A stretch of 64,000 nucleotides of DNA from Paragordius varius (GCA_964247055.1 OZ176055.1:6076001-6140000); one strand, 5' to 3'; shown: positions 1 through 46,531, counted from the stretch's first letter. Notes: generated by a model from the sequence alone, not told the origin. Made by a program: numbers and translations.

Positions 1-554
1 GTTCTTCTCTCAATATAGCTTGTGTAGGAAAACAACGGGCCCACATACCCTGATAAAAATATAAAAATAGACAATTAAATAAGAGCAAAAAATATAATTG
101 TTGAGGATATGTACCTCCATAAAGAAGACACCCTTTTGGTTAGCCAATTTTATCATTTCCTCTGTCTCACGATAATTCATACCCAGGGGTTTTTCGCACA
201 AAATATTTTTATTGTATTTAAGCAACATTTTAACAACTTTAAGGTGCTCACTATTAATGACCGAAACATATATTACGTCTAAATATGACAAATAAAAACA
301 AACCTAATTCAGAATCTTTGCCTAATTCTTCATAACTTCCATATGCTTTTGGAATTTGACGTTCAGAGGCAAAAGTTTTCGCTTTTTTCAAATCTCTAGC
401 GGCAACGGCCATAATCTATTATAATAAACATATTTTGCACCTTATGTCCATTATCAGGGTCACTTAAGAGACCGATACAGAAATCATTAGAAATTCTACC
501 AGCGGAACATATTCCCCATCTCAATGGTTTATCAGCGGAGGATGAATCAGCCAT
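1..554 (-). CDS. DHDH: Trans-1,2-dihydrobenzene-1,2-diol dehydrogenase-like oxidoreductase (Gfo/Idh/MocA family), 3' end outside window
   Basis: ATG at 554. Spliced translation [25 protein letters not shown]...[14 protein letters not shown]...YGSYEEL...[13 protein letters not shown]...[10 protein letters not shown]...[12 protein letters not shown] has the family motifs. GT-AG introns at 416-440 (25 nt), 279-303 (25 nt) and 50-114 (65 nt) keep the frame. Confidence 0.93.
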
Positions 555-632
555 TTACAAAGCGTGATAATGAAAAACTAAGGTTATTTTTACAACCCAT
601 TCAAAATACCTTACTTAAAAACAATTTTACAT

Positions 633-1100
633 ATGAATATTACCACTGCTGAATTAAAGAAAAAAGCCTTTTTGCGAAGGAATGCGATAGAGATTTTATA
701 TAAAATGCTACAAATCACAAGGTTTGAAGAGAGAGAATTAGAATCATTTGTAAATTAAGCTTATAAATTAAGCTACCATACATTGAGCGGCAGGATTTTT
801 TGGATTTTATCCTAGAAAGATCTTTGGATCCTATTTGTGGTAATCCGTTTTGCACAAATACCGAGGTTTACAAATTTAAATAGTAGCGAGTTAATGAAAG
901 AAAAAGCAAAGTATAAAATAGATAATTCAAAGCAAAAATTGTATTTATCCTCTGAACTTGAAAAATTTTGTAGTGTTAACTGTTACGAAAAAACTTATTC
1001 ACGATTAAATGCCATACCAGAAGTTGCACTTTGGCTTCGCCCCGAATGCCAAGCTTTATTGCAAAATTATGATTTTGAACACGATATTCAGCGCATTTAA
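633..1100 (+). CDS. RPAP2: RPAP2/Rtr1-like RNA Pol II CTD phosphatase, about 139 aa
   Basis: Spliced translation ...ERSLDPICGNPFCTN...KYKIDNSKQKLY...EKFCSVNCY matches the Rtr1/RPAP2 zinc-binding pattern (human ERSIVKLCGYPLC...KYKISTKTNKVY...FCSNFCY). Introns 750-772 (23 nt) and 866-890 (25 nt) are required for frame. Confidence 0.85.
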
Positions 1101-2329
1101 AATATAAATATTATTTCAATAAATTTATCGTTTGCACATATTTCTAATTATATTTTTTGTTTTTCATCCATATCTAGAAAGTAATTAGATTTTGGTTTCT
1201 GTTAGGCCAATTTTTGTCTGTAAAAAATATAACCGGTTCCTCACAAATAATCACGTCCCTAAATTTAATCTAAAATAGTTTTTATTTAGTCAATTTAAAT
1301 ATTCTGAACATAAAATTCAACTATTTTTCTTCCCAAAAGTAAAGTATGCTTTTTGGGTAAATAAACTAATTGGGATCAATGCAGAATTTTTTCCTTATTA
1401 CATTGTATTCTTTTCATTTTTAGTAAATTGGTTAATATATATATATATATATTTAATTGGTTTTAATTAGCGAAAACGTTTAGGCCCTTCATGGGTATTG
1501 GTAGGTTTTTTTTATAAATAAGGCGTAATTTTGTTATAAATGTAATAATCAATGTTTTTGGCTATAATGAAATTATCAATCAATATATTATGATTAAAAA
1601 AAACTTTAATTTTTAATATTTAAATAGGCACAACAGAATCGGCTTCGCCGGCCGCATTTAAAAATATATGTCATTAATAACTATATTATATGGTTTAAGA
1701 GATAAAACTGTAATTATATAAATAACCTATTATTTCACCAATTGCTAATGCCGAAATTATGGAAGCGTTTATTCAAAGTTTAAGAAATTTTTGGATTTCA
1801 TTTATCATATAAATAGCCATATTTACAAATTAAAAAATTTTTTATTTCAAAGTTTTTTGGGCCATATAAAATACCTTGGAGGCCCGCATGTTAAGCACAT
1901 CTTCTTTATATTTTGTTTAGCTATTGTATCCAACCGAAACAATCAGCTGATTTTAAGAATGTATAATTTTTTTGCAAGCCCTAATTAAAACATTAAAGTT
2001 TAATTATTATTTTTAATCATAATTTATTTTCAAAATACAATTATCGTGACTTACATAAAAACCAGAGAACTATTAAGCGGAAAAATGTTTGAAATCTAGG
2101 AATTTTCATTTTTCATTTTTTTTTAATTTGCACTCAAAAGTTCATAGAATGCATATTATTAAATTTGGACAAATATTTAAAAACTATTAAAATATTAAAG
2201 GTAATCGTTCTCGGTACACAACTATCCAAAAGTCAAGGAAGGGTCAATAATCCGACGAAATAGTTTCGGCTTTAGTGTCTTTTTCGGTTTCATTTTTAAT
2301 TTCCTAATATGATTTTGTCAGAATACAAA

Positions 2330-5865: not shown

Positions 5866-5911
5866 CTAAAAAAGTATTGAGCGATAAATTAAATAAAAGT
5901 TTTATTTAAAT

Positions 5912-6094
5912 CAGGGGTGTTCAACACAAATATTTACGCGGGTTGATAAATTTTTGGTTTTATATTTATATCCAAATATTGCCAAATTTTGGATATGATA
6001 TCTTTTAAATAATCGTAATTTTTTTATTAAGATCCATTTTTTTTATTTTTAGATCACTTTTGCTTACCAAAAAAGCGTGTTAAACGACCCCCTG
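5912..6094. mobile_element. hAT-type MITE (CAGGGG termini) with 8-bp TSD
   Basis: Starts caggggtgttcaacac and ends gtgttaaacgaccccctg; atttaaat directly flanks both ends (5904-5911, 6095-6102). Confidence 0.85.
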
Positions 6095-6534: not shown

Positions 6535-11625
<5,091 letters not shown>

Positions 11626-11668
11626 TTCTTAAATCATCTGTGTTTCTTTTTTCTGCATCTCAGCAAAA

Positions 11669-12027
11669 ATGAGTGATAAGTTGCAGTACGAAATGCAAAG
11701 GTTTGAGCAAGAATTGATGTATGCTATGGATACTAACAGTAACTACTATATTCGTTATTTATGTTTTTAAAATAATGACTAAAACATTGTTTTATTTCCT
11801 AGGCACTCCCGGTCATATGACAGCAGATCAATTTTTGCGGAAATCTTTACCACCTCCACCACCAATAAATCCTCCCCAACAACAACAATCCTATGCTAAT
11901 AATTTGTTTAATATGCCTTCAACAGCAGCTCCCATTTTACCAACTCAATTTATACCACCTCAACTCAAACATCGGTACATGATATTTAAATTTGTTTCTT
12001 AGCTAGTAAATAATTAAGAAATATTTT

Positions 12028-12074
<47 letters not shown>

Positions 12075-17297: not shown

Positions 17298-20200
17298 TTA
17301 AAACATTCCTTTGGAATATTTAATATCACTCTTATGTTTGCGGGCATGATTGGCTATGTGGTGTTTATGCTTTTCTTTATACGCATAATTTTTGTTTTGA
17401 TTCATGGGATTTGTGCTAATTTTCGATTGAGTGGGTAAGGAAGTTTTTGACGCACCTATATATATATATATATAATATTAAAATAGTATGAATGATTTAA
17501 ACTACGTTATAATATATTACTAAAAGTTGAGGTTTTACACCTCAGAAGTTTTGCAATAAAAAATGGTAAAGATAAAACAAAGGAACTAAACAAACATTTT
17601 CACAAAAAAACAACCATCCATACAGTTAAAAACCTTGATTGCTACAATTCATTGTGAACACAATTGTGAAATATAAAATAGTGTAAGTGTATTTATATAT
17701 ATTTACTCTCAAAAGTTAAATATAAATAAACAAGGTATAAAATAGATTTGATAGTTTTTAGTTTTAACGTTTTGTTTGTATGATAAACATTAAAGTTACT
17801 AATATATAAATGTATTTTACCAGAATTTTTAGTTGAAGGGGTGTCTGCATCAGAATTACTTGATTCTTTATCATTTTTAAGATTAGATAATCCATGGGTA
17901 AATCCCGTTTCATAAGTCGTATCATCATATTCGTCTTCGTATTCAAGATCAGGGTGATTGGGACTAAAATAATAGAGCGAATATTTGTGTTAAATTTTTT
18001 AATTTAAACATTAAATTTAATATAAACCGAGGTTATTTAATTTTTTCCATGTTTTTGTCTAAATTTTTATACATTTCAAATGATGTGAATTAATAAACTT
18101 ACATTTATCATTCTAGAGATGTGATAAAAACACTTTTTAATTTTTGTTTAAAATTACCATTTTTATAAATCAATTTTATACATAAGTGTCGCTAATTTTT
18201 AACCTAATTAAATAAAAATTAAAATTCTCGTAAATATCAAAATTTTCGATACAATAATATTTTATCAATATTATTGTTTATTAAAAAAGATTTTGCCATG
18301 TATTAAAAATTTTGGATATAGTTTAATTTAATAAATTTAACCCCTATACTTTTTATTTATCCATTCATTTTGTGGGAAATTGCCCGTTTTAAGATAATTT
18401 CTTTCGTGATATTCTTCGTTCACTGCAATAGAGCTTAATGATTCATCTTGGCTAATACCATATTCCTCACCACCATGCCATAAATTATGTTTGGAAATAA
18501 AAGTTTTTGTTAATTCTCGGCCTTCGCATTCCTCCGCACGGTTAGACTTAGTGTTGGGCAATTTTGCATTAGGTGCTTGGGGATATTTGAAACTAAACAT
18601 ATAATTGATCTTAAATGCGTATGGAATAAAAGTTGAGAAATGAAAATCTTATTTTATTATATATATACAATTAAGCGTAATTTAAAATAAATTTACTAAT
18701 ATTTTTATTTAAAAATTAAAAACAAACATATTATTATTGTTGTTTCGAATAAAAAAATATTAAGGTTTGTTGTTTGCATCAAAAGTCGCACCACAAAAAT
18801 ATAAATACAACTATAGCAATACGCTAAAATTAAAAAATTATAAAGACAAAGCGTTATGAAGAGATTAATAATATTTTTGTTATAGCTACAACTGTATTTT
18901 TTAGTTTTTTTATATAACTTTTGTGATTGACGATTGTGAAATATATAATTTAGAGTTTACCAATACACTTATCAACATTTCTCATTTTACAACTGTTATG
19001 TTTAATAACTTAATTGTTTTTGTTAACTTATCTCAATTAACCTTTTCTATATTAATTAACTTAATTGACCTTTTTAAGCTTTAGTTAATTGTTAATGAAA
19101 ATATAATGTTCTCCTTCCTATTGCCTTAGTGCATCATACACTTTTGCCCTTGTTACGTTAAATATGTATATTACCTTGGTTGAAAAGGCTTTCACCTAAA
19201 TACTGTAATCATATGCTAAAGCCAAATTTAGAACTTTATTTAACCCGACTGGGGTATCATTGTCTAATGTCCTCAGGTACCTGCTAAGTATTTCTGCCTC
19301 TAGTTGTTTTTCCTTCAAACCGCATATGAATACATCCCGTATTATCTCGTCGATGTTACCTTTGAACTGGCATGCGGCAGCTAAATTTTTTTGTCTTATC
19401 AAATCCAAGAATACAGGATAATAATGATAATATTAAAGTCATCTTTCTTGCCCAATCGGGTATTGATAATGTTTCTAAACAATTCTTTTACCCCCTTAAC
19501 ACTGTAAACATTTCTTGGGAGGAGATAAAGCTGAGGTTAAAATATTACAACTAACGAAAAATACTTTTCTAGCCAGATTAATTTCTTTTAATCGGAACGA
19601 CTATCGGGTCAAGGATTCTTGGAATTTTTTATAAGACTCAAAAATTTAGCCGCCGCATGCGAGTTCAAAGGGAACATTGACGAGCTAATACGGGACGTAT
19701 TTATATATGGTTGAAAAAAACCAGAGACCGAACTACTTAACAGGTACCCGAGGGCATTAGACAATGATACACCGGTGGGGTTGAATAAAGATTTTAATTT
19801 GGCTTTAGCATATGAAAGTTCTCGCCTGGAAGCTGGTTTTATTTTATACTTTTTACTGATATATAAATAAAAATGTTATCCTTTTCTCTTACCTAAGAAG
19901 ATAAGTAAGAATATCGACCCTCATGCTTTGAGGAACAAAAAGACGGTCACCTAGATATAGAAGGCCGTATGACTCTTCGATATCATTTCTCAGTAATTTA
20001 TAGGACTGCACCCCCGGATGAGACCAATCATTAGTCTTTCGTGCTGCTTTAATATGTTTACATACCTCATCGCTCATAGTTTCTTTAAGCACCCTCTCCT
20101 TGTTTAAGTTTAACTCCTAACACCATAGCAACCGGACCTCCTGCGCTATATCCTCGTCATTGTCACACTCTTCAGTTATCTCAGTTGGTAGTCTTGATAG

Positions 20201-23200
20201 TGAGTCTGCTAGATTTTCGGTTCCCGGGTAGTACATAATGTTGAAGTCTAAAATGAGTTTATGAAATCCATCTTAGCAATTTACTATTGTTTAGCTCGCC
20301 TAATACACGTTGATGCCCGAATAAATTGATAAAAGGTTTATGGTCTGTTCTGATATCGAATTTTCTACCATATAAAAATGTTTTAAATTTCTCTAGAACC
20401 AAAAGAATGGCTTTTGCCTCTTTTTTTACAACCGAAGAATTTTTCTGCTTAGGGAATACTAGTTAATTTTTAAGAATAATAGCCTTTTAATCTCTTCACT
20501 TAATTTTTTTTGTAGGGCCAAAAAAACCCTTCTAGCCCGAAATACTCGGCCCCTACTATTGTTTTCTAAAATATGTTTATGGATTGCCCTTTCCAACAAC
20601 CCAATTTGTTTTCAAATAAAGACTTAAATTTATTGTAAATATCGGTTGTGTGATATAATTCATTAGGCAATGGGATATCGAATAGCTGGATCCAATCCAT
20701 GCCAAATATTAAATACCACAAAACGTTTTCAACATTAGATAAAGATGCTTATCTTCGAATTCCACACCCGGAATCTCAAAATCTTCTTACAATATCCACA
20801 CCTCTTGGGGTTTTTTAAATATATTAAGCTCCCTTTTGGTCTGTCGCGTGCACCTAGTTTTTTCCAACAGATCATGGATATTAGGGGATTGTAAGGGAAC
20901 AACGGTATACTTAGATGATGTAATTGTTACGGCGGAAACGGATGAGGAGCATTATAGAAACCCAACAGAAATTGAAGGGTCTTAAATTATAAAAAAAGAT
21001 AAAATAAAGCTTAAGGAAGTAGAATATTTGGGTTTATATCAGAAAAAAGTATAAAACCAGCGAGCAGTAATAAGGCCATTCGCGAGTGTCCAGCCCCTAA
21101 AGATTAACCACTCCGATCGTTTTTGGGCCTTTTAAACTTTCATTCATGATTTATACCTTTTGTAAATACAATTGTCAACGAACTTCATTAGCTAGCTGGT
21201 TCCAAAAATCCAGAACGCCGGTTAAACCAGGTACCGTGGGCTTAGTCAGCACATCACAATGGTATAAATGAGATACCTGCACGACTATTTCTAAAACGAA
21301 ATTTACCGACACCGCTGTCCTGGATGAAAGGCAAACCAAAGGATTATATTGATGGCACCTCAGATATTATACGTGAGTTCATTCCAGGTGAAAAAGTATT
21401 TATAAAGGATGAGTTAGCAACCGGTTGTATCAAAGATAGAAGTAGGGTTTACAAAAACATACTTATCAATTGAGAGGGCGAAGAGATGGTCCATATGAAC
21501 TTAAGCTAGCCGACCAGAAAGAATTGGAATCGGAACAACAGAATAATAATGATAATATCATAGCCACCCACTCGGTCTACAATATCAATAATGATAATAC
21601 CAATCCTTCCCCGATATTTGTCAATAATTCCACAATAATAAACAAACTCCCAACGGCGATAAGATTGCAGGACCCTCAAGCATGGAAGTACCAGTCGAGA
21701 GACGCTATCCCACCAGAAGCCGAAAAGCCCCTGACAGATACACAAATCACTTTTAAATTTAGATAGGAGATATGTTATGTTTAATAACATAATTGTTTTT
21801 GTTAATTTAAATCAATTGACCTTTTCTATTATAGTTAACTTAACTGACCTTATATAAGCTTTAGTTAATTGTGAATGAAAATAAAATGTTATCCTTCTCT
21901 CTTAGTGCATACATTTGTCCTTGTTACGTTAGAAATGTATATTATCTTGGTTGTGAATGCTTTCACCTAAATACTGTAATAATGAACCTTATGCAAATAT
22001 ATAACTTGGTTGTGAATGCTTTCATCTAAATATTGTAATATTTAACCTTAAAAAAAGCAACCTTGCTCTAAAACTATATATAATGCATTATTTATAATGT
22101 TACAATGATTTCCTTTTGTTATTAACATTATTATCAACGACCTAAAACACGAGGTTATATCATAAAAAATCAAGGATATAAAAATATGGTTGTATTTATA
22201 CAAATAGTTTTTTAATTATCAAGTTTTGCCTTTATAATGATTTGTTTATAAAAATAATTACTAAGGTTTGAAGCTTGAGTCAGGAGGCTGAGGGTGAGAT
22301 TTTTGTTGAGTATGTTCATCCATGGGTATAGCTAAATAATCGGTATGAAATATTTTATTAATATTAAATGTCGTTCCAGCGTTAATAAATTTAAGGATAT
22401 GAATGTCAATTTATTGAAACATATAATTGGTAATTATTGCGATTTAAAAAATAACCCTAAAATATATTTATTAATTAAAATTTTTAAAAGTATATAACTT
22501 AATAAAATGTTGACGGATAAACGGCCTAAAAAATTATGAAAATAAATTTTTTTTCTGACCTTGACTATTTTCTTCCAAATTTGGTGGTATATTGTTATCC
22601 ATCAGTGCATTTAAAGCCTAAAATAATATATATATTAATGCAATATTTTGAACTGAATATTTTCACAATAAACATTTTTACCCGATCTAAATTTGTATCG
22701 TAATACTTCAAAACTGCCATTGCCCTATCAACCGTGAGGTTTGGGAATAATTCAATGATAGTATTTATAGACGCCTGATTAATTCTCTAAAATATAGAAA
22801 TATATGTTTTTTGAAAAAAAAACAATAAATATAACTAAAATTAAGTCAAAATAAATGGGAAAAAGCGTATAAAATTATTAATTGATTAAAGATCATTTCT
22901 ACTCTTTAATTATATTGTAAAATGCGTGATTTTTTACTTTTTTTAATACTAAAATAAAAAAATAAAATCGGTTTATTTTGTTATCTTAAATTAGTAAAGT
23001 TTTTTTATTATTGTATATGATGAAAAACAGATTTTCCGAATTTAAATAAAAAAACACTTAAAAGCCAATTTCTTATACATTTGGATCATATTTCGAATTT
23101 TAAAAGGCCATGATTTTGGGCTGTTAAAAATTGCGTGTATCATTCCACAAACCAAATAATTTGTAGATATTAGATAACAACAATAAAATATATTTGATAA

Positions 23201-26200: not shown

Positions 26201-27129
26201 TTGATTTATAAGGGTTGTTTTTATGGTTGAAACTTTCAACAGCATATTCTTAACCGCTTTTGACAGCAATGAATGATTAGTTTCGCCATATACGTTTATG
26301 AAATTTATCAGAGTATTGCCATTATTGAACAAAAATGAATTTGAGCCCAGAATGTGTTTAAAAAGTCGTTCGGCCTCTTTCTCAGCATATGAACGGTCAA
26401 AATCCTTGAAAACAAAAATTAAATGGTAAAAATTTAGTAAATCTTATATTTAAAAAAACATCCAAAATTTTTGACTATTTGGCTCGTGGATTTGATTAAA
26501 TTTAATTGTGCAACTGAAACTAAAGATACGACTTGTATTATACCATTTATAATATACATAATAATTTAGTTTTTTATAATTTTTAAAACGCTTGATTTAT
26601 AAATAAATTTTAACAGTTAGTTTTAATTTTATGATTAATAAATTTTAAAGATATATTTAATAAGATATTAATACCATTAATGAAACAAGTGTTTATAAAA
26701 ATTTATGTTACTTTATGTTGGTAATAATCAATTAGTTCCTTATACGTTGTGCATCGAATACAAAGTAATAAAACAAGTTTAAAAATTTCTTGTTCGATTT
26801 CTGAATGCGCTTGTCTTTCATCCTCAATAATTTGAAAAGGTCTAAAAGCTTTACGATATATTTTACTTCGGAAATCGTTCTAAATATATATTTATAAAGC
26901 TAATAAGATTTTCATCGAAAATCAAATGATTCCAAAAAGATATTGATGGTATTTTCAAAAGTTTTTTCAAATATCCCGATATATTTTGTTTTATTTCAAA
27001 ATCATTTCCAAAATTATAGGTGGTTATATTAGGAAATAAGACATCAGGTATTATATGAATCGGATTCTACTTATTAATAAAGGCAAAAACCTCTTCTGCA
27101 GAAAATTTTACAAAGCTTTTGTAAGTCAT
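17298..27129 (-). CDS. ASCC2: Activating signal cointegrator 1 complex subunit 2 (CUE domain)
   Basis: ATG 27129. YLKKLLKIPSISFWNHLIFDENL...YLERFP and FKLVLLLCIRCTTYKE match the ASCC2 N-terminus. CUE-like INTIIELFPNLTVDRAMAVLKYYDTNLDR-ALNALMD at about 22.6-22.8 kb, then LEYEDEYDDTTY, and C-terminal KHHIANHARKHKSDIKYSKGMF*. Introns 27067-27090 (24 nt) and 26842-26866 (25 nt). Confidence 0.88.
18994..22040 (+). mobile_element. Decayed, internally rearranged Ty3/gypsy LTR retrotransposon in an ASCC2 intron
   Basis: Direct repeats starting TGTTATGTTTAATAAC at 18994 and 21773, the second preceded by a purine tract. Gag-like AACEFKGNIDELIRDVF; RT-like KLPFGLSRAPSFFQQIMD and YLDDVIV, plus FLGLLNF; RNaseH/integrase-like pieces at about 19.9-20.6 kb lie on the opposite strand. 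End coordinate approximate. Confidence 0.88.
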
Positions 27130-27169: not shown

Positions 27170-30100
27170 ATGCCAGTTGAACTAGAGAAAAATTTGAACG
27201 AGTTTATTTTCATATTTTATTGGTATTTAGCTTAACCCTTTCGTTCAATACAGCCATTTGTGTTCGATGTAACGAAGGGTTTGCAGTTGAGGAGCAAATC
27301 GTTAATACAAACGGGGAATTATGGCATCAAAGCTGTTTTGTGTAAATTTTAATAAATATATTTTTTAGGTGCGTACAATGTTTTCAACCGTTTCCTGATG
27401 GTGTATTTTACGAGGTATTTTTATTAAATATTTATTATAGGGCAAAAAAACTACTAAATAAAATTGAATTGACAAAAATAATTTCCTAATATAGCTTGTT
27501 TTAATTATAATTACCTTTTAAAATCATATAATAAGTCAAATTTTGTAAATTATTTGCAAAAACCTTAATAAAACTATATTTTAGTATCAATTAGTTTTCT
27601 ACCTTATGCCATAATTGTAATCTTAAGCTTGTGCCTTTTAAAAGTATAAGTAATTACTATATAAATAACACCTTTGTTCACACATACCTTAAAATCTTAA
27701 TGGTGTTTAAATTTTTAATTTATTTACTCTTTATATAGCACGAAGGTAGAAAGTACTGTGAACACGATTTTCATGTTTTGTATGCTCCGTGTTGTTCTTC
27801 TTGTGGTAAAATATTCATTATCTTTTTACCCAAAATCCCATACTCATATTCTTTTGCATTTTTAAACCTTTTGGGGTCGTCTTCTACCACAAGCGATTTT
27901 GATTAATAATAATCCTTAAAAAATCTAAAATTTGAGTAAAATATTTATCACAAATTTCTTTTATTAAATTGAAAAAACTGGCAAACAAAAATTTTAAAGC
28001 GCCGACAACAAAATTTTGGTATTTTTTAAAAAACAGCCCTGTTTCAAATGGATTTTTAAGGTATCTTGATTTTAGACTTTGAAAATTGAAAAATAAATTT
28101 TCCAATATATAATGGAATATTCTTTAATGATAATATTGAAAAACAATTAATATAAAGTTTTTAGTTTACATATTTAAAGCTTTGGGACAAAATACTCCCT
28201 AATATATATCAGTCATATAAAATATTGAAAAGGTAGTTAAGCAATAACTAACAAATACCTGCAAAATTTATTAATTTATGATTAGGTGAATTTATTATTG
28301 GGCGCGTGATTAAAGCCATGAACGCTAATTGGCACCCAGATTGTTTTACGTGCGCAAATTGTCAAACCATATTGGCGGATATTGGTTTTGTTCGTATCAA
28401 TAACAAGTATATATTATTATGTATTTTATTCAATAAAGATTATAAATTGCTATCACAATTATGTTTCAATAGATCTTATGACACTATAATAAAAAAGTTA
28501 TTTTATAATCATTTGTTCGTGTTTTATCAAGAACTGTTACCAATACATATATAAATTGAATCATGAAACGTAAACTAATGTAAAATTGGATATTTAACAA
28601 AATATATTTTTGCTTTATATAAATGTTTTAAATAAACTTTATTTTTTGTTAAGGGCTTTTTGCAAAGATTGTAGTTTGAAGGAGCGTATAGAGGGCCTTG
28701 GTAAAATGCAATGTTTCAAATGCAAGTAATTTTTTTCATTTTATTCGTATAATTTAATTTGTCATACACATATATTTCATTACATACATTAGACAAGCTA
28801 TTGATGAACAATATTTAGTGTTTCAAAATGAACCCTATCACCCATATCATTTCAATTGCAAATCTTGCGGGTAAAAGATTACTAATTCTAATTTGGAATA
28901 TTACATTTATTTTGAAAATTATAAGATTAAAACAATTTTAGTAATGAATTGGACAGTGATGCACGGGAATACAAAAGCGAACTATATTGCCTCAAATGTT
29001 ATGATAGATTAGGAGCAGTTCCAATATGCGGAGCCTGCCGGTAAGCTTTCAATTTTGATCCGTTATTAAGTTTAATAATATATTAATTGACCTTCGAAAA
29101 TTAGTGCAAAAAAGAAAATCGCCATATTTCAATAAATATATATGTTTACAATTTTAATTATAAAAACGTTTTGTTGAAGTTTTTGAGATTATTGATTCTT
29201 AACATGTATAGCATAACATAGAATACAATATGTTTAAAAACAAAATAATGTATATTTTCTAAAAAAGAAAAAAAAGAATCCGAGAGGGGTATGGTAAATT
29301 TTAAGAGACTTAAGGTAGTGGGTAACAATTGGTCGTTGATTATGAACACGTCTGCCTTTTTTCATTTCACCTTGTTTATCTATTATCATATAATAATCAT
29401 TATATTGTATATAAACTATTTTAATTTTTACTATTAATTTTTTGGTTTTTACTGTAAATATATTATATACCATTTAACCATCAATCATAGCATTTGGTTT
29501 TGTATCAATTGAATTTTTTCCATTTTTCAATCAAATTAAAATTTTGAATGGATATTATATAGAACGAAATATATATTACTGTTTTTTTTAAACAAGAAGC
29601 ACGATTTCATTAATAATATATTTTTACAACTATATATATATATATATAACTTTTAAACAGTCGCCCAATCGAAGATGCCCGTGTAGTAAGGGCCATGGGC
29701 AAAACTTGGCACCCTCAGCACTTTGTATGCGGTAAGTGTGAAAGACCCTTTTTGGGTTCACGACATTACGCTTATAAAGGCATACCCTACTGTGAAACAC
29801 ATTACCATGCCTTGTTTGGGAGTGTTTGTTTTGCCTGTAATAACGTTATCGCTGGCGATGGTATATATTGTTTTTATGTTTCAATAGATATTGAGAGCTA
29901 AAATTCGTTGGTTTCCTAATTTTTTAATTTTTAACAATTAAGGAAATAATACAGTAAAAAATGAAATTATATAGACTGAGCGAAAAAAATAAAAGACAAC
30001 CATATCGTTTGAACATTAATTTTTCTTTTGGCTTGCAAAATGGCAAATAATGTTAATTAGTAACACACACAGTTATATATTTCAAAATTCTAATATTATT

Positions 30101-30991: not shown

Positions 30992-32269
<1,278 letters not shown>

Positions 32270-33239
32270 GCCGTAAACGCGTATTTATGATTAACATTTG
32301 TTTCAAATTTGCCACGGTGCTAAAACATGCGCATTATAAAAATAAATATTAGAAGGGACCTCTATTTGTAACTTTTTTTATATACGGTATTGACTATGGC
32401 AAAAACAATGATAACAACATTTATAATATAGAACGGAGTCGCAAATCGGGGGTATATAAAAACTATCTTGATGAATATATATATATTAATCACAAAAATT
32501 ATCAGGAATTGGTGCTTGTCATTTTGGCTTATACGAGGGATTTAAGAAAGTTATTTGCACTTTTGTGGTGCTCCCTATTAGTAAATGGCAATATTTGCGC
32601 TCATTTTTTAAAATATATAATATACTACATATAAAAAGCATAAAAAAAATTAATGTGGGGTCCAAAGTCCCAATTCTTCCTCTAAGAGCTGTTCTATAAA
32701 AAAATTTTAAAATACAGGGATCGCATGATAAATATTTTTATATGCTTAATTTTATAAAAAATATTATAAAGTACATACGTTTTTTATAAATAAATTTTTT
32801 TAGTTTAATTTTGTTAAAGCGTCATCATACTATCTTGATGCATGAAAATAGTTAAAAAAGCACCTCTATATAATTCCGTAATGCTGAACATTTCTATTTG
32901 GTGATTATTAAGAACACAATTTTATATTTAGCATATTGAAGGCGAACGAATGTTTATAAAAATTTTGAGTTAAAAAAATGTTAGGCATAATTATGTGGGA
33001 AAATTGTTTTTAAATGTCTGAAAGCGCTTTTATACCGTTTCCGTCATGCCTCAAATTAGTATGAATGCTTCAATTGAATCTAGCTCAAATTTTAATTTTT
33101 AAAAATATGATGTTTTTAACAATCGATTCGAATTGGGGTATCACAATAACTCAATATTTAAGTTATTATATTCAAAAATCTACTGAAGAAACGGATCCAG
33201 TTTAATTATATGCTTCTATCCTAATGTTATTGTTGTTAT

Positions 33240-33460
33240 AAGCTAGTCATGCAGTGACTCTTGGTTTTCTCATAAATTAGTGTTCTCCATTTTTGACGAT
33301 CTTGTGATTCTCTCAAAAATTGAGGAAAAGTTCGGTTTGTTATTGATTTAAGCATGTCGATCCACCGCTTTTTTGGTCGGCCCCTTCTGCGGGTGCCATA
33401 TACCAACCCAAAAGTATGCTTTTTCTAGCGAGTCGGATCCCAGGATATGACCCAGATAAA
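33240..33460 (-). mobile_element. 5'-truncated RTE-clade LINE (3' end only)
   Basis: YLGHILGSDSLEK then, after a frameshift, GTRRRGRPKKRWIDML...SQDRQKWR, followed by a caa-rich tail. This is the typical RTE ORF C-terminus. Confidence 0.8.
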
Positions 33461-33875
33461 TAAATAAGCCAAAATATCTAAAAATTTATTTGTAAAAAAA
33501 ATTCAGTAACAAACTACTTTCGCGCCATTTTTATTTGCATCATTTTTGCAAAATATCGTATTTATTTTTTACCTAAAATTAAGTTTACTTTGGTATTAAA
33601 ATGACATTCGTTGATAACAGAAAAAGCGATATATTTTGCCTATGTCACATGTCATGTTAGCTAAATTTTTACCTTGAGGTTTTACCTATGAATAATTAAT
33701 AAGAAATATTTTTGAATGATATTTTTTATATTTCAGTTTATTAATGTATTTTAGTGAGACTTTTGCCATAGTTTATTTTATTTTTTTTAATATTTTTTAA
33801 ACAATTCTGGGGTATTTAACTAGCCCAAATCAAAGGGCTCAAATTAATGTGCTGTATCCAAGTGTCAACAGATAA

Positions 33876-34780: not shown

Positions 34781-35611
34781 TAAACTTTTTTTCCAGTTTT
34801 TTATATGGACCCATTACCTATGTATCCTTAATTTCTTTAAAGACACAAGGCCCGAAAACCCATATATTTTAGTTATAGAAAATATATGCTTTAAAAATGT
34901 GTTTTGTGTGCACTCTGTAAAATAATTTACAAGGTTTCATAAAATTGCACCCTTTTAATATGATAAAGACTTTTGTCAATCTTAAACTATTTTAACTTTT
35001 TACAAAAGGTTTTTGCAAACTTTTACAACTGTATTTCGAAAAGGATATACTTTATACATTATTAACATGTATGGTTCGCTTTTTCGATTTTATTTCTGAA
35101 CTGTTGTTACTTTACTTTTTAATTAGCTGAGAAAAAATCGAGGGGGGTGAAAAGAATTACATTAATTTTACATGCTGATAACATAAAATCATTATAACTT
35201 TGGGGGCGAAAAAAATAATGATAAGGTCGGTCTAGACAAAAAATGATCGGGTTTCAGTGCAATCATTATCTCACCCTTATTATACCTTCTTCTATAATAA
35301 GTTATTTCATTTAAGATAATGATATAAATATGATGTTAAAATTAAATTCAATACATATATTTTTTAAACGGTCACATTTGTTGCGCCATTTCACCATATA
35401 ATGTTAGAGTTGTAATTTTGGGTTTTTAGATAGTATTGAAGTATTATAATTTAAAATCAAAGATATTTATTGGATTTAATTTTAAAACGTATTATTTAAG
35501 TTTTATAAAGGGATCTATATAAAACAATCAATATATTTAAAGTTACATTTATTAGTATCTAATTAAACATTACAATCTTTAATTAATTTTTTAATGGTAA
35601 TTACGGAATTG

Positions 35612-38600
35612 ATTGAACCATTCCTTATTTTTATGCCGTGATCAGACAAATTTCCAATGCAAGCAATCGACGCCAAAATCATATCGGGCAAAATGATGTC
35701 TTCAGGGTGGCGTTTGAGTAATTTTATAGTTAGATTGGAGTTTTCTTGTTTTAACAAAACCTTTTATAAATCATTGATTATTTTATATAAAATATATTTG
35801 TTGTTGCAAATTAACGAAACAGCCAAAGTGATAGGTTAGCCCAAGAAAGATGAGAAGGCTAGTGTACTTATTCAACTAAATAGATTTACAAAATACCCCA
35901 CACTTAATAATTTCATGTGGGTTTTGTGTTTTAGCTGCAAAAAAAACATCCTAAAGCCGTTTAATTTCCACAAACATTATAAACAAAATATATAAAGCAA
36001 TTAACAATTATAATATGAAATTTAAAGTTGCTTAAAATTCTAGCTTTAAAAATTATATAAAAAATGGAAAACACATAAAATTGATAGAAACCGGCGACAC
36101 GGGTGTGATATAAAACAGATTGTATACAGTTATCACTATGATCGAAAAAAGGGAAACCAATATACTTATCGTTTTAAAACTTAAAAGAGGAAATTGAAAT
36201 AATTTTTAGATTCAAAATTTTTTGGTAAGCTACTTGTCGGGAATATAGGGGGCATTACTTTTAAAAATTATTTTTGATACCAAATATTATGTAAATATAA
36301 TTACTAACCTTATCTGATGTTCGAAATGAATAAGTAGTATGAAATCTTTCCTTTAAATTAAACAAGAGGTAACTGCATTCAGTATTTCTTTGCACAACAT
36401 CGATTACGATCTAAAATGACATGTACTTAATTATTATTATATAAATATATATTATCACAATAAAATTGTTATTTAAATCTTTAAATCCATAAATTTTAGC
36501 TATGATTGGAACGATGTTTATTTTGGGATAAAATAATGATTAAATAGCATAAATAATGTCATTCATAGATTTGGCTTTTAGCATAAATTTTTTTATTTTT
36601 ATTGAATATCTTCAAAATATCAAAAATAATTTTCGCCTTTTGTAGTTATAAATTTAATTTGATATGCGTTAAAAATAAAAATTTATTTTAATTATTTTTG
36701 GGAACACATGTTTTCAAAATTTTCAGATCTGTTATGACTCTGCCCACCACCAGGTCAAAATTCTTAAAAATGGTCATTCAAAAATCAACTTATAATGCAA
36801 ATGAGAGCTATTTATTTTTTTCCACCACGGTCACTATAAGCGAAATGTGCAAAATTCAAAAATGATTTTCACTGGAACGCACCACATTTTACAATATGAT
36901 AAATATATAAAAAATAAAACTCAAAAATCTATCCAAGATCCTTAAGCGCCTACGGTGTACAGTTCTGCTTGAAAAAGTGGCTATAGGACTTTTATAGATT
37001 TTTTCACAAAATTTATTAAATTATATATCATGGTCTGTCTTTACCAAAAAATGATTTGGTCAATACGGCCCTCTCAAAATACCCCATGTGTAAAACAATG
37101 GCTTATTATGCATGACTTTAAATTTGACTAAAGAGGCCATAATCGACATTTAAAGGCCAAAGTTATATCCTGGCTTATTTATGAAAATAGGGTGCCTGAT
37201 TTATCATAAATTCTGCCTTTATGGCAGATATTAGCAGATGCACATAAATTTATAATATTTTATAATATCGTGGTGATTAAAATTAATAACAGTTGTAAAA
37301 TCCGTAATATAATAATTTTGAATAGAAAATTAATTGAAAGATAATTATAAACAAAATTTATAAACGATATGTGAAACCCTTTCGTTAATAGTAATCGTAG
37401 ACTAGTTTCGTGCTTGTTAGCACTCATCAGTACGACACAACTATTTGACTTGGGGTTTTCACATATCGATTTCGTGTATATATATATATATATATATATA
37501 TATCCAACTTTGCAATTTTGGTATAAATGCAGTTGGTTATACATTTTTTAAATTAAATTTATATACGAAATCGATATGTGAAAACCCCAAGTCAAATAGT
37601 TGGTCGTACTGATAAGTGCTAGCAAGCACCAAACTAGTCTGCGATTTCTATTGACGAAGGGTTTCATATATCGTTTATAATTTCTGTTTATAATCTTTCA
37701 ATTAATTTTCTATTTAAAATTATTATTATACTAGCGTAAATCTCGTGCTGCTACTCAGCCCAGGGAAGTCCTTCGGACTTCTGGGAAGGTGGGGGAGGGG
37801 GGCTATTTGAAATAAGGGACAATAAAATGGTCCACATATGTGGATTATTTCGAAACATTATTTAATAGATATGATTTTATAGGAATTATAAACGGTGCAT
37901 TCATAGTAATATATTGTTTAATTGGGGGAAAAATAGATTTAAAAAACTATTAATGTGGACTTTGTTTTTTTTTAAAAAATGGCATTTTACGGGGGGAGCG
38001 GGTAAAAAGAGAGACAAATCAAAAGGGCGAGACGACTTTGTTCGGCGCAATCAAAAATAACTAAAAAAATCATATTTGAAATTGAATGATCCAACACGTT
38101 CTCCAGAAAATTGTCTCAAAGACACGATTTTTGTGGACTTCTGTTTTCAAAAACAAACCCGTTTTTCACACGGGGTGGGCCCGAACTGGGGGCCTATTTC
38201 AAAAAAAGGCGAAGCTATTGTCGGGACATTTATTAATGATTATATTTTTTCGATATTTGGATTTAATTGGGTCTACCGGTTTCCCGGTACCAGATCACAA
38301 AGCCAGCATTTTCCATTTTTATAAATATATATATATTACGGATTTTACAACTGTTATTACAAAACATAATCAATCCGTCATTTACCATTATAATATCATC
38401 TTAGATTAAAATTAATGTTAAAAAACTAGAAAAAAATTTACAATATTTATGTTAAAAATATGAAAACTCCCATCAATCAAATCGTTACTTATATTAATAT
38501 AATAAGTTTATAGTTTCTTTTCCTCAAACTTTTACCCAGAACTACGGTAAGAAGTTTACTGTAGCCTTATATTTGAAATTTATTCAACAAATAACATAAT

Positions 38601-41600
38601 TCGTTTCAAAAAATCAATTTTGTTATTAAACCAACATAAAATGGTATTTGATCTATAATTATTATATGTGCTGTTAATTGATAATTTTATTTATAGTATA
38701 AAAAAAACTTTAATCTTATATAAAAAATTTAATTCAGGCTGCTTTTCTAAAAATATTTGGTGGTTTTATGCAACCCGCAACGCAGTAGGTACACAGCTTT
38801 TTTACAAATTATTGATCTACCACAAAGAATAACTTTTTAGGTAATTTAGGGGCCGTTTGGACTATTCCGGTTCTAAGTCGCTGAATCCCCTTTGATAATT
38901 AATAAGATAATAATTAAGGTGTTTTTAAATTACAGTTAATATTTTTAACATTGCGAAACAATACCGTTAGCGTTGTGGTTATCGTAAAGTTAGTCCATTG
39001 CTCTGAAATTTTAAGAATGTAATTCAAATTTTGGAAGAGGTTGAGTTTCACACTATTTCTTATTTTAATCCATTTAAATACGGAACTAATCCATAACCAA
39101 TAATAATATCTATCGACAGTAATGGGAACGTTTCTAATTAATAATATTTTTAATCTATAAAGTATTAAATTAATAATTTTACCAAATCTTTTGATATTGT
39201 TTAAATCAGGGGTGCCCAACAAAAATGGCTTTGCAGGCCGTCATTTGATATAAATATATGGACATTCATATATAATTTATTATATTTCAAACGTAAAAAC
39301 TGTAATATGCAAACCAACATAACAATTTTTTTCTGATTCTTGCCAAGACTAAATTAAAAAATTGTTTAAGAAATGTTGATTTAATTATTATTTCGTTAGC
39401 ATTTTATAATCTATGGATCTTTACATTTTTCGCGTGCCGCGTGTTGGACACCCCTAGTCTATTATAGGCTATTGATTAAATAAGCTAATTTAGTTTTTAT
39501 GTTTTTATGACAGAGTAAAAATTTGGTCAGGAATGTATTGAATTGTACTAAAAGTTCTTAAAGCATACTTAGAGGCGTAGCTGCAGGACAGGATATTGCA
39601 CTGGGCGCCATAGTTGAAGGGGAGCCGGATTTAAAATTTTTCAATTTTATTTCAAAAAAATAGTAGATATTTAAAAGTTTTTATTTTAACTAAGACATAA
39701 AAAAATGACCAATTTATGAGTTAGTTTAAATTTGATTATGCGATTGGTTGAATGGAGGGGGAGGGGGACGCGGGATTTATGCACCGGGGGCCAGCAAGCT
39801 AGGCTTCTAAGCATACCCTTAGGAGCGATATAAATTTCGAGTTACCTATAAAATTTGCCGTACTTTTAATATATGAATTTAAGTAATAATGTATTTGTTT
39901 CCTATTTCCTGTAAAAACAGGTGCCATAAACCAAAAAATCTTTTTATTTTTTACACCTATTCAATATTTAAAACCGTATCTATTTAACTTTTTATGAGAA
40001 GTGGAATATTAAATTAATTTTTTGTTATTGTGAGACAAATCAAAAAACCCTTTTGTAAAAACATTGGTTAGTAATTATGATCTAAACAGCAATGTTTTAA
40101 ATATAATTTTCATTTTTTTAGTTTATCGATCAGGTGTTAAGCATTGATTTGATACCAACTCTATCCTGAAATGCAATAAATATGGTAATAACCAAAAAAA
40201 TATTAAAATTATAGCAAATATATAATTATAAACACAATTATAGTTTCTATCAAATAATTTTTCATGTAATTTGGATTTTTTATTTTAGCCATTTTGAATA
40301 ATGAATTTAAAAACAAGGGTCTTTATCCATAACGAGGCTTTGTAAAATGTTTGTTTATTAACATTATCCCTATTACACACAGTATTATTGAAAACTCTGT
40401 TAACTAACCTATATTTTTACCTCAACTCAATTTGTGAATCATTAACTAAGAAATTGTACAATCCGGAATGTGTTACAAGCTTGCAAATGAAATCGATTGA
40501 GATAAAATAATCTATTTAAGCGAAATAAATTAATTTCATATAGTTGATTGTGCAGCTCTAGGATATAAAATATTCTTTGTCAAAAAACTTTATGAGGATC
40601 GTTAACAACAACCCATTTTAACCATTCAATACTTTTTATGTAAAAGGAATCGGTTATTTAATGGGGATAAAATGATTTTATGAAATTTATAAAAAGTATC
40701 CTTAAACATAATGCTATGGATTACAATAATAGTTATTTTTACCTTTACGAAACTTGCGTGTCATATCGTAACGATCATAACCTGAATATTATTATATAAA
40801 AATTTAGAATACTTTCGCCACATGATTCAATTACAACTGTTAATTCAGACTGGGGTATTAAATCATTGTTAGGGAATGATGTTTCGTTCGATGAATACAT
40901 TTCCAGCGCAGCTAAAATCATATTTGGCACATACAAATGATCCCGTAAAACAATGTAGGAGGGATAAATGTCGAAAACTTGTAATATACTGTTACCATGT
41001 TGATAAAATCGAGTCTAAATTGATGTTTGAGTATATATATCAATACTGTTTAGCGGAGGGGTATCCAACACACGGGGGTCCGCAACTCTTTGTGCGGTTC
41101 GAATTTTTTCAGAATCATACATATCTTAAAATCTAATTTTAAAAACCATTTTTCGCAATTACACTATTTGCAAGGTGCCCCCCAAATTTTTTCGGGTTTG
41201 AAACCTAATGAGTTTCAGTAGACAAAAATGCATAAATTAGAACAACGAATCACCATAAATTTGACAGACCATTTATATAATATATAAATAAGTGACCAAT
41301 ATTCTATTATAATTAGCCTAATATATCAATATTAAAAGTTTGTTCTCTCAAAAATAAATAAAACCGAATCGTTAAACCTGATTGACCAAGTCTTATCATA
41401 ATTGCAGAATTATGTTAAAAATTATTTTAACTTAGCATTGTACAATCAGCTAGACTTGAGAGCGACATTTGGTTTTGGTAATTACTATTTTTAATAAGGG
41501 AATCCCATCATTCAAATGGGACCTATTCAATTGGTACGTTTACTAAAAAATTATCAATTCCAATTGGAACATAATTTGACATATGAAACTCAAAAGGCTT

Positions 41601-44600
41601 ATTCAATTAATATTTACATTTCTGTAAACATAAAAATCAAATCCTTTCTTAAATTTTTTAATTAGGGTTCAGGCTTTATATATCAATTTTAAAATATTTA
41701 ATTGAAAACAAAAAAAGTTACTAAATATGGTTTTGTATCCGTCAAAATGGGGTCGATATAAACTTCAGTTAGATTGTCATCGGGTTGTATATGAACACCA
41801 TACGAATAATGAGAATCTCGATTTCTAACATACAAAGCTTTCAACATTGATCCATTGATATCTATGTAATACTAAAAAATATTGGTTATCAATATTTTTA
41901 AATATAATGTTGCTTCATTTTTTTAGTTAATTAATTTATTATATACATATATTTAAGATGCAACCTATACCTAACAGTGATATCTTTTGGGCACTTTCAA
42001 TTGTTTTTACAATGTTCAAAATTTTTTGTCAAAAATTTATATTGAAAACATTGCTATTTTTGGATAACCCCGTTAAATAAAAAAGGGAGATCTTTGAAAT
42101 CACTGAAAAATGTCATTTAAGAACTAGCTGTCCCTGTCGCGCGTTGTTACTAAGCCTGACTGATGATTAGATAATTGGCCTAAAATATTACAATAAACTG
42201 AATGGAAAATATAAACATTTACATCCCTTTGAGGATTTCAAATTCACTCATATTAAACAAATTCTTCATATTAAAACTGTCCCTTATTCAAGATTGATAT
42301 GATTACATCATTTAACAAAAAGCAATGTATGTCCTATTAGGATTTTTAAAACTATTTTAAATATTTTTTTAAATATACCAATTATTTTTACGCACTCTTA
42401 AAATCAGAAAAGGAATCTCCTTTTGAGGATTCGAAACTAGTCGCTGAATTGTCATTTTTAAATTCGCTTTTTTAATAAATCTTTTATAATTTTATCATAC
42501 AACTTTGAAAATTTTCGTTTTTCCATGGAACAAAGGTTTTAATATATGGTATTCTTTTTACCCATATACTGGGAATTATCCAAAAGGGTTAAAAAAGTCA
42601 GTTAGGGAATTTATGATGAGTATAAATCCCAGAAACTCGTTTTACTTGATAATATTTTAAAGCGAATTTTATATGGGGTGGAGCCCTGCCTAGCAACAAA
42701 TTAAAATGCTTAGCAAAAATTTAACAGAACGTTGACAAATTCATATGCCCTTATACGCATATAAAATTGCTTTAAATTTTTGCAAGACATTTTAGGCGAG
42801 CGGCTAAATGCAAAGTTTCGAAAACAGTGGGTTTGTCACTGTCTACATATTTATAATACAGACCAAAAATATTTGATAAAATATCTAAGAATAATCATGG
42901 TGTTTTTGTTGATTGTTCCATATTGCAAAAGTTGCGCATATTTTGCTAAAAAAAATTGAAAATGCTGCATTCCAAAAATTATCATTATAAAATTAAATCG
43001 ATATCTTTATAATTGATTTATAGATGTGATAGCAGAAAGTCTTAAATTTTTGGACCCCTCAAAAATGCGGTTATCTCAAAATATGCGTGAAAATGCCGAG
43101 ATGTGGCGATAATAATTTATGATATGCGGTAGATTATGGCGCAAAATTTACCCATTTTCCGAAAGATTTATCCCATCCGATATATTAAATAATCCAATTT
43201 TGGAGGAATACACTATACGGCTTATTAAACAATGAGTGTAAAAATACAAGTTTTATTCGAATGGCTTTATACTCCGAATCGATATAGAGACGTGGCTGGA
43301 ATGCGAATCTTATTTGAAAATAAAAAATGTTAGATCTGGCCACATTCATAAAAAAATAAAAAAATCGATTAAATATCTATTTGCGTCCACGTTAATTTTA
43401 CAAAACCATTAATTGTACAATGACCCTCTCTAAAAACGGTGGGGCTAAACAGTGGGCTAATTAAATATAAGGCTTTGTGACGTTCGTCGCATTTATATAA
43501 ATTTAAAAAACATTTATTATTGAAACTGAATGGGAGTACAAGTTTTCCGAAAACAAGCATCAAACTCAACATTTTAGGGATTTGGATTTTTTCAAAATTT
43601 TATTTTTATGATGGGGAAAACAGGAATCTATTTAAATGGCCTAGCATCCTGGGAACATATTTAAATAATAAAATATTTTAAATAAATCCGCACGTCAAAA
43701 AATTGATTCAAAGTCTACATTACCTATTTAATATAACAAAAAATGCTAATTTTTAAATTAAATAATTTACATAATTATTATTATTTCACTTAGCTGCAAA
43801 AAGCGATATTGATAAGTTATGTGCTATTGGAAGAGTAAATAGGGTTGAAATACTAAAAAAGAAATGTATTTGACGTTAAAAATTGTACACTATAGTACGG
43901 GCCAAATAAAAAATATAATATCTTTGCAGGTAAAAACTGATGTAAACTAGTCTTAGATCGCTTAATTACAACCTTGGTAGTTTAGCCAGAGTAGCAATTC
44001 AGAAATCCAAAATATACATTTGGCCTTTGCGTATTACTAACACTTCAGAGCCTTTTCAATTTTTTGTCCTAGTATATATATTGTAGTTTTATAGCCCAGA
44101 GTTCAATTTTGTAACATTGTTATTGAGTTTAGTTAAAATTAAATTATGCAACCTTGTTCTCATGAATTAGATAAAAAAGCTTATATTTTTACAGTTTTGT
44201 TAGAGTCTGATTTAGAAACAGCTCCTAAATACGATTAAAACGAGCAGCTGATATTAAAATAAAAATATATCAAATTTTTGCTGGTAAAATAGAGCCTTTA
44301 ATTATTTTATTCTAACCCTAATATACATTCATTTGTCTGTTGCATTAGCAATTCAAAAAACATAGAAAAAAATGGCGGAGAAGTTTGAGCTTTTTAAAAT
44401 TTGATAATGCGCCTAAAAGACTAAAAAAACATAATTTTTATTTCGGCTTAAAAGCTTATATACTTATTAAAATACACAAATATTAAATAACTTTGGATAA
44501 AATTAACTTAAAGGTCATGGAATATGAAAAATCTCTTGAAATGATAAAATTATTTGAAAATTCCCTTCAAATTTATTTAGTTACTACTACTGCATAATCC

Positions 44601-45053
44601 CAAAAAATATTATAGTGCTAAAGGTATTAATGATTTTTTATATAATAATCTGAAAAAAATTACATCATTGTTAAACATTGCTCGCATAGAATTAAAAATT
44701 AGATAATCGTTCGGCACCAAATAATGGAAATAGGAGGAGGAATTAGTTGAAAATTTATATTGTGGAAACCGGCAAACTATAATCCCCTCATATGTATGCA
44801 GTAATGTCATATTTCTTATCTGTGATATTCTATTAAATACTATTATATTTTTGCAAAACCATATAAAAATAATTTAATTATACCTTTGAGATATAAAATT
44901 TATATCAAAAGAATTAAATTCTGGGAGAGCCATATTACAAAGATATATATATGAATTAACTCTAAGATAGCTTAAATACAGGTAAATTACTAAGACACTG
45001 ATTATATTTATCATATTATTAGATATAACAATTGCAAAAAAGTTTATTGACAT
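35612..45053 (-). CDS. Unrecognised multi-exon gene or tandem paralog cluster, putative secreted/membrane glycoprotein(s)
   Basis: Signal-peptide-like ORF from ATG 45053/45014 ending at a GT donor. Clean AG/GT-bounded open exons at 41722-41871, 40813-41014 and 40743-40781, plus about 40421-40511, 39847-39956 and 35612-35760. Introns of 31 nt (40782-40812) and 24 nt (40397-40420). Many N-x-S/T sequons. Connectivity between exons is not resolved. Confidence 0.5.
37284..38359. repeat. Foldback (long inverted repeat) element, interrupted by a Helitron
   Basis: Arms about 37284-37478 and 37562-37730 are near-perfect reverse complements around a loop containing (TA)n. The right arm resumes at about 38333-38359 after the Helitron. 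Confidence 0.85.
37731..38332 (-). mobile_element. Non-autonomous Helitron, copy A
   Basis: CTAG end with nearby hairpin gaagtcc-ttc-ggacttc. Reverse-complement homolog of 53364-53930. Confidence 0.8.
39207..39456. mobile_element. hAT-type MITE (CAGGGG termini)
   Basis: gtttaaat-caggggtgcccaac at the left and gttggacacccct at the right; right TSD degenerate. Confidence 0.7.
39570..39809. mobile_element. hAT-type MITE (TAGAGGCGTAGC termini)
   Basis: Imperfect TIR tagaggcgtagc / gctaggcttcta; 8-bp flanks agcatact / agcatacc. Confidence 0.75.
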
Positions 45054-45111
45054 TTGATTGGTACAAACATTTGCTTAGCTTCACTATTTTTTGAAAGGTT
45101 ACGTTTCCCTT

Positions 45112-46531
45112 ATGAGGTTTAATTATTTTTAATAAAAGCAATCTGCGTCTACAAAAACGTTTAGCTTCATGCGTTTTGAAGTGTGGAAAAAGGAAAGTAT
45201 GGTTAGATCCAAATGAAGTAAATGAAATATCCAATGCTAATTCAAGTAATTGTGGTTTTATATATCTTAGGACAAAGCATCCGAAAATTAGTTAAAGATG
45301 GTCTTATTATTAAACGGCTAGAGGCTATACATTCAAGAGCAAGAGTTCGTAAAAATATTATTGCACGAAAGAAAGGTAGACACACCGGCCCCGGTAAAAG
45401 AAAAGGGACCGCTAATGCTCGTATGCCCGAAAAAGTTTTATGGATGCGACGCATACGAGTTCTGAGACGGTTATTGAAAAAATATAGAGATGCCAAAAAA
45501 ATAGACAAACATTTGTAAGTAATTAGATATTATTTGGATCATTCTTAGTTAATATATTTATTCTATTAAAAATATATACGCGTTTTCTGATACTAAAACT
45601 ATTTTTAAATGCATAATTTATTCAATCTAATCAATATTTGTGTATATTAAGCGTGTTTAATAGTTTACAAATGTTTTTCATTTTAACGCTAAATAATACC
45701 AAATTATTTTTATTACCTTTAATTTTTTGGTTTTTTAAAAGGATACCCTTTTGACAATCCATATGGTTAGGCTATTTTTTAGATGGTTATAATTTTTTGC
45801 TTTTGAAAGGTAATTATGAAAATTGTTATATATTTTTCTTGCCATTTTTTGAAATATTAATTACAGGTATCATTCATTATATATGAAAGCCAAGGGTAAT
45901 GTTTTCAAAAACAAGCGCAATTTAATGGAATTTATTCATAAGAAAAAGGCTGAAAATACCCGAGCTAAGCAAATAAGGTATAATACTTATATCTATTTTC
46001 TGTTGATTTAATTTATATTTCTATAAAAACCGTATAATTTTTATATAATTTATATCCTTTCTTATATAAATATATACCATTGTTCAAATTCATCCTGGAA
46101 CAATTCAAATTCACCCTTAAAATAAATTATGTGTTTTCGAAATATATAACTCATTATTAATATGAAATATTTTTTTATGGCATAATTTATTATTTTTCAG
46201 CATTATTTTAATTTAAAATTTCTATTATTTAAAAATATATAAAATAGGTAATTTTTAATCTTAAAAAAACATATTTTATTTGAGGGTGAATTCATATTGT
46301 AAATATTATATATATAAATTTTTTTAAATATGGCATAAAATTTACTTGCTAATATTATTAATATATATAATAAAATTATTTCTTAATAACTTTGTACTCT
46401 AATTTATTTTTAGCGATCAAGCCGAAGCTAGAAGAGCTAAAGTTAAAGAGTCAAGAAAGCGGAAAGAAGAACGCGCCGCTTTGAAAAAGGTTGGTGGGGA
46501 TATGGTTAAACCTACTGATGATACAAAATAA
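45112..46531 (+). CDS. RPL19: 60S ribosomal protein L19 (eL19)
   Basis: [28 protein letters not shown]...[20 protein letters not shown]...[17 protein letters not shown]...DQAEARRAK. Introns 45117-45138 (22 nt) and 45246-45270 (25 nt), then two longer introns. Confidence 0.98.
46077..46305. mobile_element. MITE family A copy in an RPL19 intron
   Basis: tataccat left end, aattcaaattcaccc repeats, inverted gggtgaatt at the right; degenerate right terminus. Confidence 0.7.

Follow-up and report, generated by a model that had tools for sequence, protein, structure and literature searches.

We examined a window of 64,000 nucleotides (nt; 28% GC) from the genome of the hairworm Paragordius varius (GCA_964247055.1 OZ176055.1:6076001-6140000; positions are counted from its first letter), which holds a class of putative introns only 22–29 nt long, here called micro-introns. 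A preliminary description of this DNA had listed 14 such segments, and their ends and lengths could all be confirmed: each starts with GT and ends with AG on the strand of its gene, and eight of the 14 lie on the minus strand. The host genes are DHDH (minus), RPAP2 (plus), a BTBD10/KCTD20-type gene (minus), ASCC2 (minus), PINCH (plus), TVP23 (minus), RPL19 (plus) and one unnamed gene at about 40.4 kb. The genes were modelled exon by exon with the phase carried over each intron, and homology searches were made on single exons. With the phases carried in this way all exons of the seven named genes are open, and the modelling revealed one additional micro-intron, of 23 nt in TVP23 (31904–31926), which was absent from the earlier list. 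Each of the seven named genes has one to three introns of 22–29 nt at its start, and nearly all of their later introns span 54 nt to several kb. The segments are as follows.

279–303, minus strand: DHDH intron 2, 25 nt, phase 1; exons abut at residues 67/68/69 of macaque DHDH (2o48)
416–440, minus strand: DHDH intron 1, 25 nt, phase 0, ATG at 554; exons abut at residues 30/31 of 2o48, which exon 1 matches weakly (E 0.22)
750–772, plus strand: RPAP2 intron 1, 23 nt, phase 0, ATG at 633; a 39-nt Gordionus intron has the same position and phase
866–890, plus strand: RPAP2 intron 2, doubtful, 25 nt, phase 0, GAG acceptor; at the position of a 111-nt Gordionus intron
11235–11258, minus strand: BTBD10/KCTD20-type intron 1, 24 nt, phase 1, in-frame stop, ATG at 11625; upstream exon non-conserved
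26842–26866, minus strand: ASCC2 intron 2, 25 nt, phase 2, placed by frame logic; upstream exon matches 6yxq weakly, to residue 102, downstream exon without match
27067–27090, minus strand: ASCC2 intron 1, 24 nt, phase 0, final TAG in frame, ATG at 27129; placed by frame logic only
27202–27230, plus strand: PINCH/LIMS intron 1, 29 nt, phase 2, ATG at 27170; no in-frame ATG is present in exon 2 ahead of LIM1
27342–27368, plus strand: PINCH intron 2, 27 nt, phase 2, in-frame stop, within LIM1; residues 36/37 to 52/53 of 2kbx
31904–31926, minus strand: TVP23 intron 3, 23 nt, phase 0; the DUF846 profile runs across it (78, then 83 at residue 10)
32007–32029, minus strand: TVP23 intron 2, 23 nt, phase 1; DUF846 positions 52/54
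32185–32207, minus strand: TVP23 intron 1, 23 nt, phase 2, ATG at 32269; placed by frame logic only
40397–40420, minus strand: candidate intron of the unnamed gene, 24 nt, in-frame stop; placed by its likeness to the class only
45117–45138, plus strand: RPL19 intron 1, 22 nt, phase 2, ATG at 45112; a cockroach intron of ~4.7 kb at the same site
45246–45270, plus strand: RPL19 intron 2, 25 nt, phase 1; introns of ~2.4 kb, 1461 nt and 192 nt at the same site in three other animals

Junctions, frames and intron features

The preliminary description held that conserved proteins are in frame only if these segments are removed. This stands for the seven junctions that are set by homology, gap-free against PDB, Pfam or orthologues (279–303, 416–440, 750–772, 27342–27368, 32007–32029, 45117–45138 and 45246–45270). 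It was overstated for five others (11235–11258, 26842–26866, 27067–27090, 27202–27230 and 32185–32207), which are set by frame logic, their removal being needed to reach a start codon or to keep the frame open, and which have one non-conserved flank. One junction (866–890) is doubtful. For PINCH, the end of exon 2 corresponds to residue 36 of 2kbx and the second residue of exon 4 to residue 54, and the interval is filled exactly by the split codon together with exon 3, which encodes 15 residues. For TVP23, exon 2 covers positions 3–52 of Pfam DUF846 and exon 3 positions 54–78. For exon 2 of ASCC2 and exon 2 of TVP23, searches for homologues gave no match under a length filter, a result with no bearing on full-length kin, and metagenome scans with PINCH exon 9 and BTBD10 exon 6 gave no match either.

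The chance of finding a GT..AG segment of such length at a preset gap is 0.002 for an exact fit and 0.022 with a slide of 6 nt, and therefore about 1e-12 or less for the seven homology-set junctions. Position and phase are shared with orthologous introns for introns 1 and 2 of both RPL19 and RPAP2. Both RPL19 introns match those of the cockroach Diploptera in this respect, and intron 2 also matches introns on two other animal contigs. Retention of the segments would cause a frameshift in 11 of 15, and all four with a length divisible by three (3n) contain an in-frame stop. A bias against stopless 3n introns is known from Paramecium; in the window the pattern is partly a detection bias, because a stopless 3n intron would resemble an insertion.

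From the DNA we infer that the segments are genuine introns, which would be removed by splicing. That they are instead assembly insertions, pseudogenes or misread coding sequence is highly improbable, since every break in frame is a GT..AG segment of 22–29 nt with 13% GC in its interior, several lie at ancestral intron sites, the chance stays at or below 0.022 per junction, and RPL19 and PINCH are otherwise intact. Such an artefact would fit the odd acceptor of 866–890 and its resemblance to old coding sequence, as well as the six junctions that lack homology on one or both sides, and it is likelier for 866–890 and 40397–40420 than for the class as a whole.

All of the segments are GT-AG and none begins with GTATCC, the donor consensus of U12 introns, as expected of the U2 type. 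A branch-site scan of 15 introns found several A's 6–17 nt from the 3′ end in each, with no fixed position or motif for A or TAA. In six introns of named genes and in candidate 40397–40420, AGs at nt 10–21 are skipped, which is in line with a length floor near 22 nt. The coexistence of the micro-introns with long introns bearing transposable elements, also described earlier, is borne out by ASCC2:

18593–22103, minus strand: ASCC2 long intron, ~3.5 kb (bounds approximate), containing a decayed long terminal repeat (LTR) retroelement

This element (18994–22050) carries a reverse transcriptase (RT) RNase H remnant with broken frames, and its terminal direct repeats, 80–93% alike, are 2.77 kb apart.

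Position bias and length gap

Our intron set consists of 49 modelled introns, 18 of which belong to CLU, a gene whose start falls outside the window. Fourteen introns are 22–29 nt long and 35 are at least 54 nt (median 216 nt), with none in between. The feature that organises the class, overlooked by the preliminary description, is its confinement to about 400 nt after the start codon. Up to 400 nt from the start codon 14 of 15 introns are micro-introns, as opposed to 0 of 34 beyond this distance, where the minimum is 54 nt (Fisher p 2e-11, or 6e-8 without the CLU introns). Micro-introns also precede the long ones in all five genes having both classes (within-gene shuffle, p 2.6e-5). First introns are the longest in Drosophila (PMC4889658), and the trend is thus reversed in the genes of the window. 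The micro-introns are not the dominant class, as they make up a minority of the modelled introns (14/49) in this one window. GTT donors are found in 6/14 of them and in 3/35 of the long introns (p 0.011).

Cap-aided recognition and its alternatives

Our preferred explanation, with a probability of roughly 0.55, is that ancestral introns shrank close to promoters and were tolerated there through cross-intron recognition aided by the cap. In a single hairworm lineage, introns of the major GT-AG class, mostly ancestral, would have become shorter down to a lower limit of about 22 nt, a change restricted to the initial ~400 nt of genes. The spliceosome would be essentially ordinary and would recognise the two ends of an intron across its length; a short run rich in A would serve as branch site, without a pyrimidine tract. 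Nearness to the cap would allow the cap-binding complex to help load U1 and later small nuclear ribonucleoproteins, and tiny introns with weak donors could then be tolerated. Downstream introns, without help from the cap, would have stronger GTA donors and a length of at least 54 nt and could accommodate transposons. Nonsense-mediated decay would remove mis-spliced copies, because each retained form frameshifts or reads a stop. The cap-binding complex is known to promote removal of the first intron at several assembly steps (PMC7462061), and the weak donors seen close to the cap in Drosophila suggest that its influence extends over about 250 nt (PMC4889658).

Several points weigh against this explanation. 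The effects known for the cap bear chiefly on first introns, yet introns 2 and 3 of genes in the window can be tiny as well. PINCH intron 3, the lone exception to the position bias, is 324 nt long and starts only 245 nt from the ATG, and all distances are counted from the ATG and not from the transcription start. The overall match to U1 does not differ significantly between micro-introns and long introns (5.0 vs 5.5, p 0.15). Candidate 40397–40420, if real, may sit more than 1.4 kb inside its gene. Finally, three pairs of head-to-head start codons (554/633, 11625/11669 and 27129/27170) are only 78, 43 and 40 nt apart, and a fourth, candidate pair (~45053/45112), formed by RPL19 and a candidate opposite gene, is separated by ~58 nt. 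At spacings of 40–78 nt the 5′ untranslated regions (UTRs) must be very short or overlapping, and the four tight pairs point to compaction of the whole promoter zone and not to a splicing effect alone.

The introns could be real and owe their 5′ bias to a compaction of the promoter zone, whether mutational or selective, through deletion bias or exclusion of insertions close to the transcription start, with 22-nt introns being spliceable anywhere. We regard this as a serious though doubtful alternative. It would account for the tightness of the non-intron DNA between the divergent start codons, it agrees with the lengths already reached in Gordionus RPAP2 (39 and 111 nt in introns 1 and 2), and it would accommodate the candidate introns of 24–31 nt at 40.4–40.8 kb, which may lie deep in a gene. 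However, the sharp gap (none between 29 and 54 nt, n = 49) and the weaker donors favour a distinct recognition mode over a smooth deletion gradient. A dual recognition mode, one of the two options put forward in the preliminary description, is plausible.

The other option was a modified spliceosome, which the observations do not require. Myxobolid cnidarians splice introns of 22–27 nt with conserved U2 small nuclear RNA (snRNA) and U2AF1/2 (PMC13644364), and tiny introns alone therefore do not imply such a change. An altered spliceosome in this lineage, with trimmed SF3b/U2AF or changed U2/U6, or a dedicated short-intron factor, is unlikely. Although 22 nt is far under the usual animal minimum of ~50–90 nt (PMC13644364), the myxobolids do without such changes, and the restriction to 5′ ends would be left unexplained. 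No RNA families were found in the window, and it contains no snRNA or splicing-factor gene.

In a survey of 51 animal genomes (2026), introns below 30 nt occurred only in myxobolids and Dicyema, both of which have reduced genomes (PMC13644364). The preliminary description had named Paramecium and dicyemids as the known bearers of this size class; both stand, and the list was incomplete as it lacked the myxobolids. The introns of myxobolids and Dicyema (PMC13644364; PMC6543705) resemble those of the window in being GT-AG introns of 22–29 nt at conserved positions, with a donor reduced towards GT and no pyrimidine tract, in clustering with other short introns and in belonging to parasitic animals. 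They differ in that they form the bulk of the introns (median 22–27 nt) of reduced genomes, whereas the micro-introns of the window are a 5′-restricted minority, with introns of 54 nt to kilobases beside them, in repeat-rich DNA of another phylum.

The liver fluke Opisthorchis felineus has microintrons of ~37 nt, which are clustered at 5′ ends beside kilobase introns (PMC6530080), and intron lengths in tapeworms peak at 36 and 73 nt (PMC5036155). Like the micro-introns of the window, those of flatworms form a separate short class, are adjacent to one another, are enriched at 5′ ends and lie beside kilobase introns, and intron definition has been proposed for them. Unlike in the window, the length peak is at 36–37 nt instead of 22–29 nt, and the splice sites of the fluke are nearer to consensus, the donors of the window being weaker at +3. 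The 5′ restriction looks sharper in the window than in flatworms, given a small sample. The ciliates Paramecium and Stentor, the latter with introns of 15–16 nt as cited within PMC13644364, are alike in size range and in that retained forms expose a stop or frameshift, but are without a class of long introns.

Judged by its sequence, the window joins the intron size of myxobolids and Dicyema with the 5′ layout of the fluke, in another phylum. We found no report in the literature of hairworm intron lengths, nor of introns below 30 nt or 5′-clustered micro-introns in hairworms, and Nematomorpha are not mentioned in the text of the survey of ultra-short introns (PMC13644364). We tentatively propose that a hairworm lineage could be the third animal group with introns below 30 nt and the first in which these are confined to a cap-proximal zone of ~400 nt; assembly coupled to the cap or promoter might lower the minimum from ~50 to 22 nt in this zone only, leaving two floors per transcript. 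Micro-introns at gene starts only, in a repeat-rich hairworm genome, would uncouple the shrinkage of introns from the reduction of genomes. A transcript that contains both tiny and long introns provides an internal control for what sets the minimum intron length and for the role of the cap. Annotation software that demands a high minimum length of introns would probably get many 5′ gene ends of the lineage wrong.

RPAP2 and minor features

The window RPAP2 (633–1100) has 139 residues and comprises the Rtr1 domain alone, while RPAP2 of other animals is much longer. A search with its exon 3 among 1.84 billion cluster representatives gave a sole real match, the 132-residue RPAP2 of the horsehair worm Gordionus sp. 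m RMFG-2023 (E 2.7e-7, 45% identity). A second match was rejected as a repetitive peptide. That the nearest protein relative is a hairworm comes from this one gene, with no tree. Together with PINCH and BTBD10 the match marks the source as an animal, and origins in dicyemids, myxozoans or flatworms were discarded on account of it. Like the window protein, this RPAP2 of Gordionus montsenyensis (CAK9304566.1, GCA_954871325.2) is a short, Rtr1-only protein with two introns at the same positions and in the same phase, but these introns are longer than in the window, and from the exon 3 identity the window probably belongs to a different, distant hairworm species. The Gordionus assembly has 26.93% GC and 64% repeats (10.1101/2023.06.26.546503). 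No synteny with the Gordionus RPAP2 locus was found beyond RPAP2 itself.

For RPAP2 intron 2, segment 866–890 is the only choice that retains both the zinc-ligand cysteine and the length of the protein. Eleven other frame-keeping GT/GC..AG choices were rejected, as each would either delete a conserved cysteine or the residue that follows, or open a gap of at least 7 residues. The first 15 nt of 866–890 would encode VYKFK, the same five residues with which Gordionus exon 3 opens (13/15 nt), a level of match reached by 5 of the 5437 GT-starting 15-mers in the window; the window exon following the segment begins with LMKEK. The adjacent 25-mers 856–880 and 881–905 agree at 14/25 positions, and 0.9% of positions do as well. 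The segment may have arisen as a new intron out of former coding sequence, once the ancestral intron had been lost and 25 nt had been inserted or duplicated. Alternatively, it may reflect a local assembly or allele problem. With its coding-like start and odd acceptor, 866–890 should not be weighed alone as evidence of a length ruler.

For the gene around 40.4 kb neither Pfam nor Atlas gave an identity or a relative. Further GT..AG candidates of 29–31 nt are seen in it at 40714–40811 (minus strand), with no consistent model. Immediately 5′ of the RPL19 ATG there is a pyrimidine run (45100–45111) similar to the TOP/TCT start of ribosomal-protein genes; if it is such a start, the 5′ UTR would be only ~10 nt. 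The 5′ end of RBM42 (11719–11802, plus strand) can be read with introns of 21 and 49 nt or with a single intron of 63 nt. The possible 21-nt intron (~11719–11739) was not counted, since the 63-nt alternative is equally good. A pyrimidine tract and an AG lie just 5′ of the RBM42 ATG. CLU has a possible 9-nt micro-exon at 58209–58217 (minus strand), a candidate lying between introns of 296 and 130 nt. Broken remnants resembling long interspersed nuclear elements are seen at 47631–50068 and 33239–33485 (both minus strand), with a weakly matched endonuclease domain. An exon at 35566–35763 (minus strand) has armadillo-repeat features in Atlas (score 0.96).

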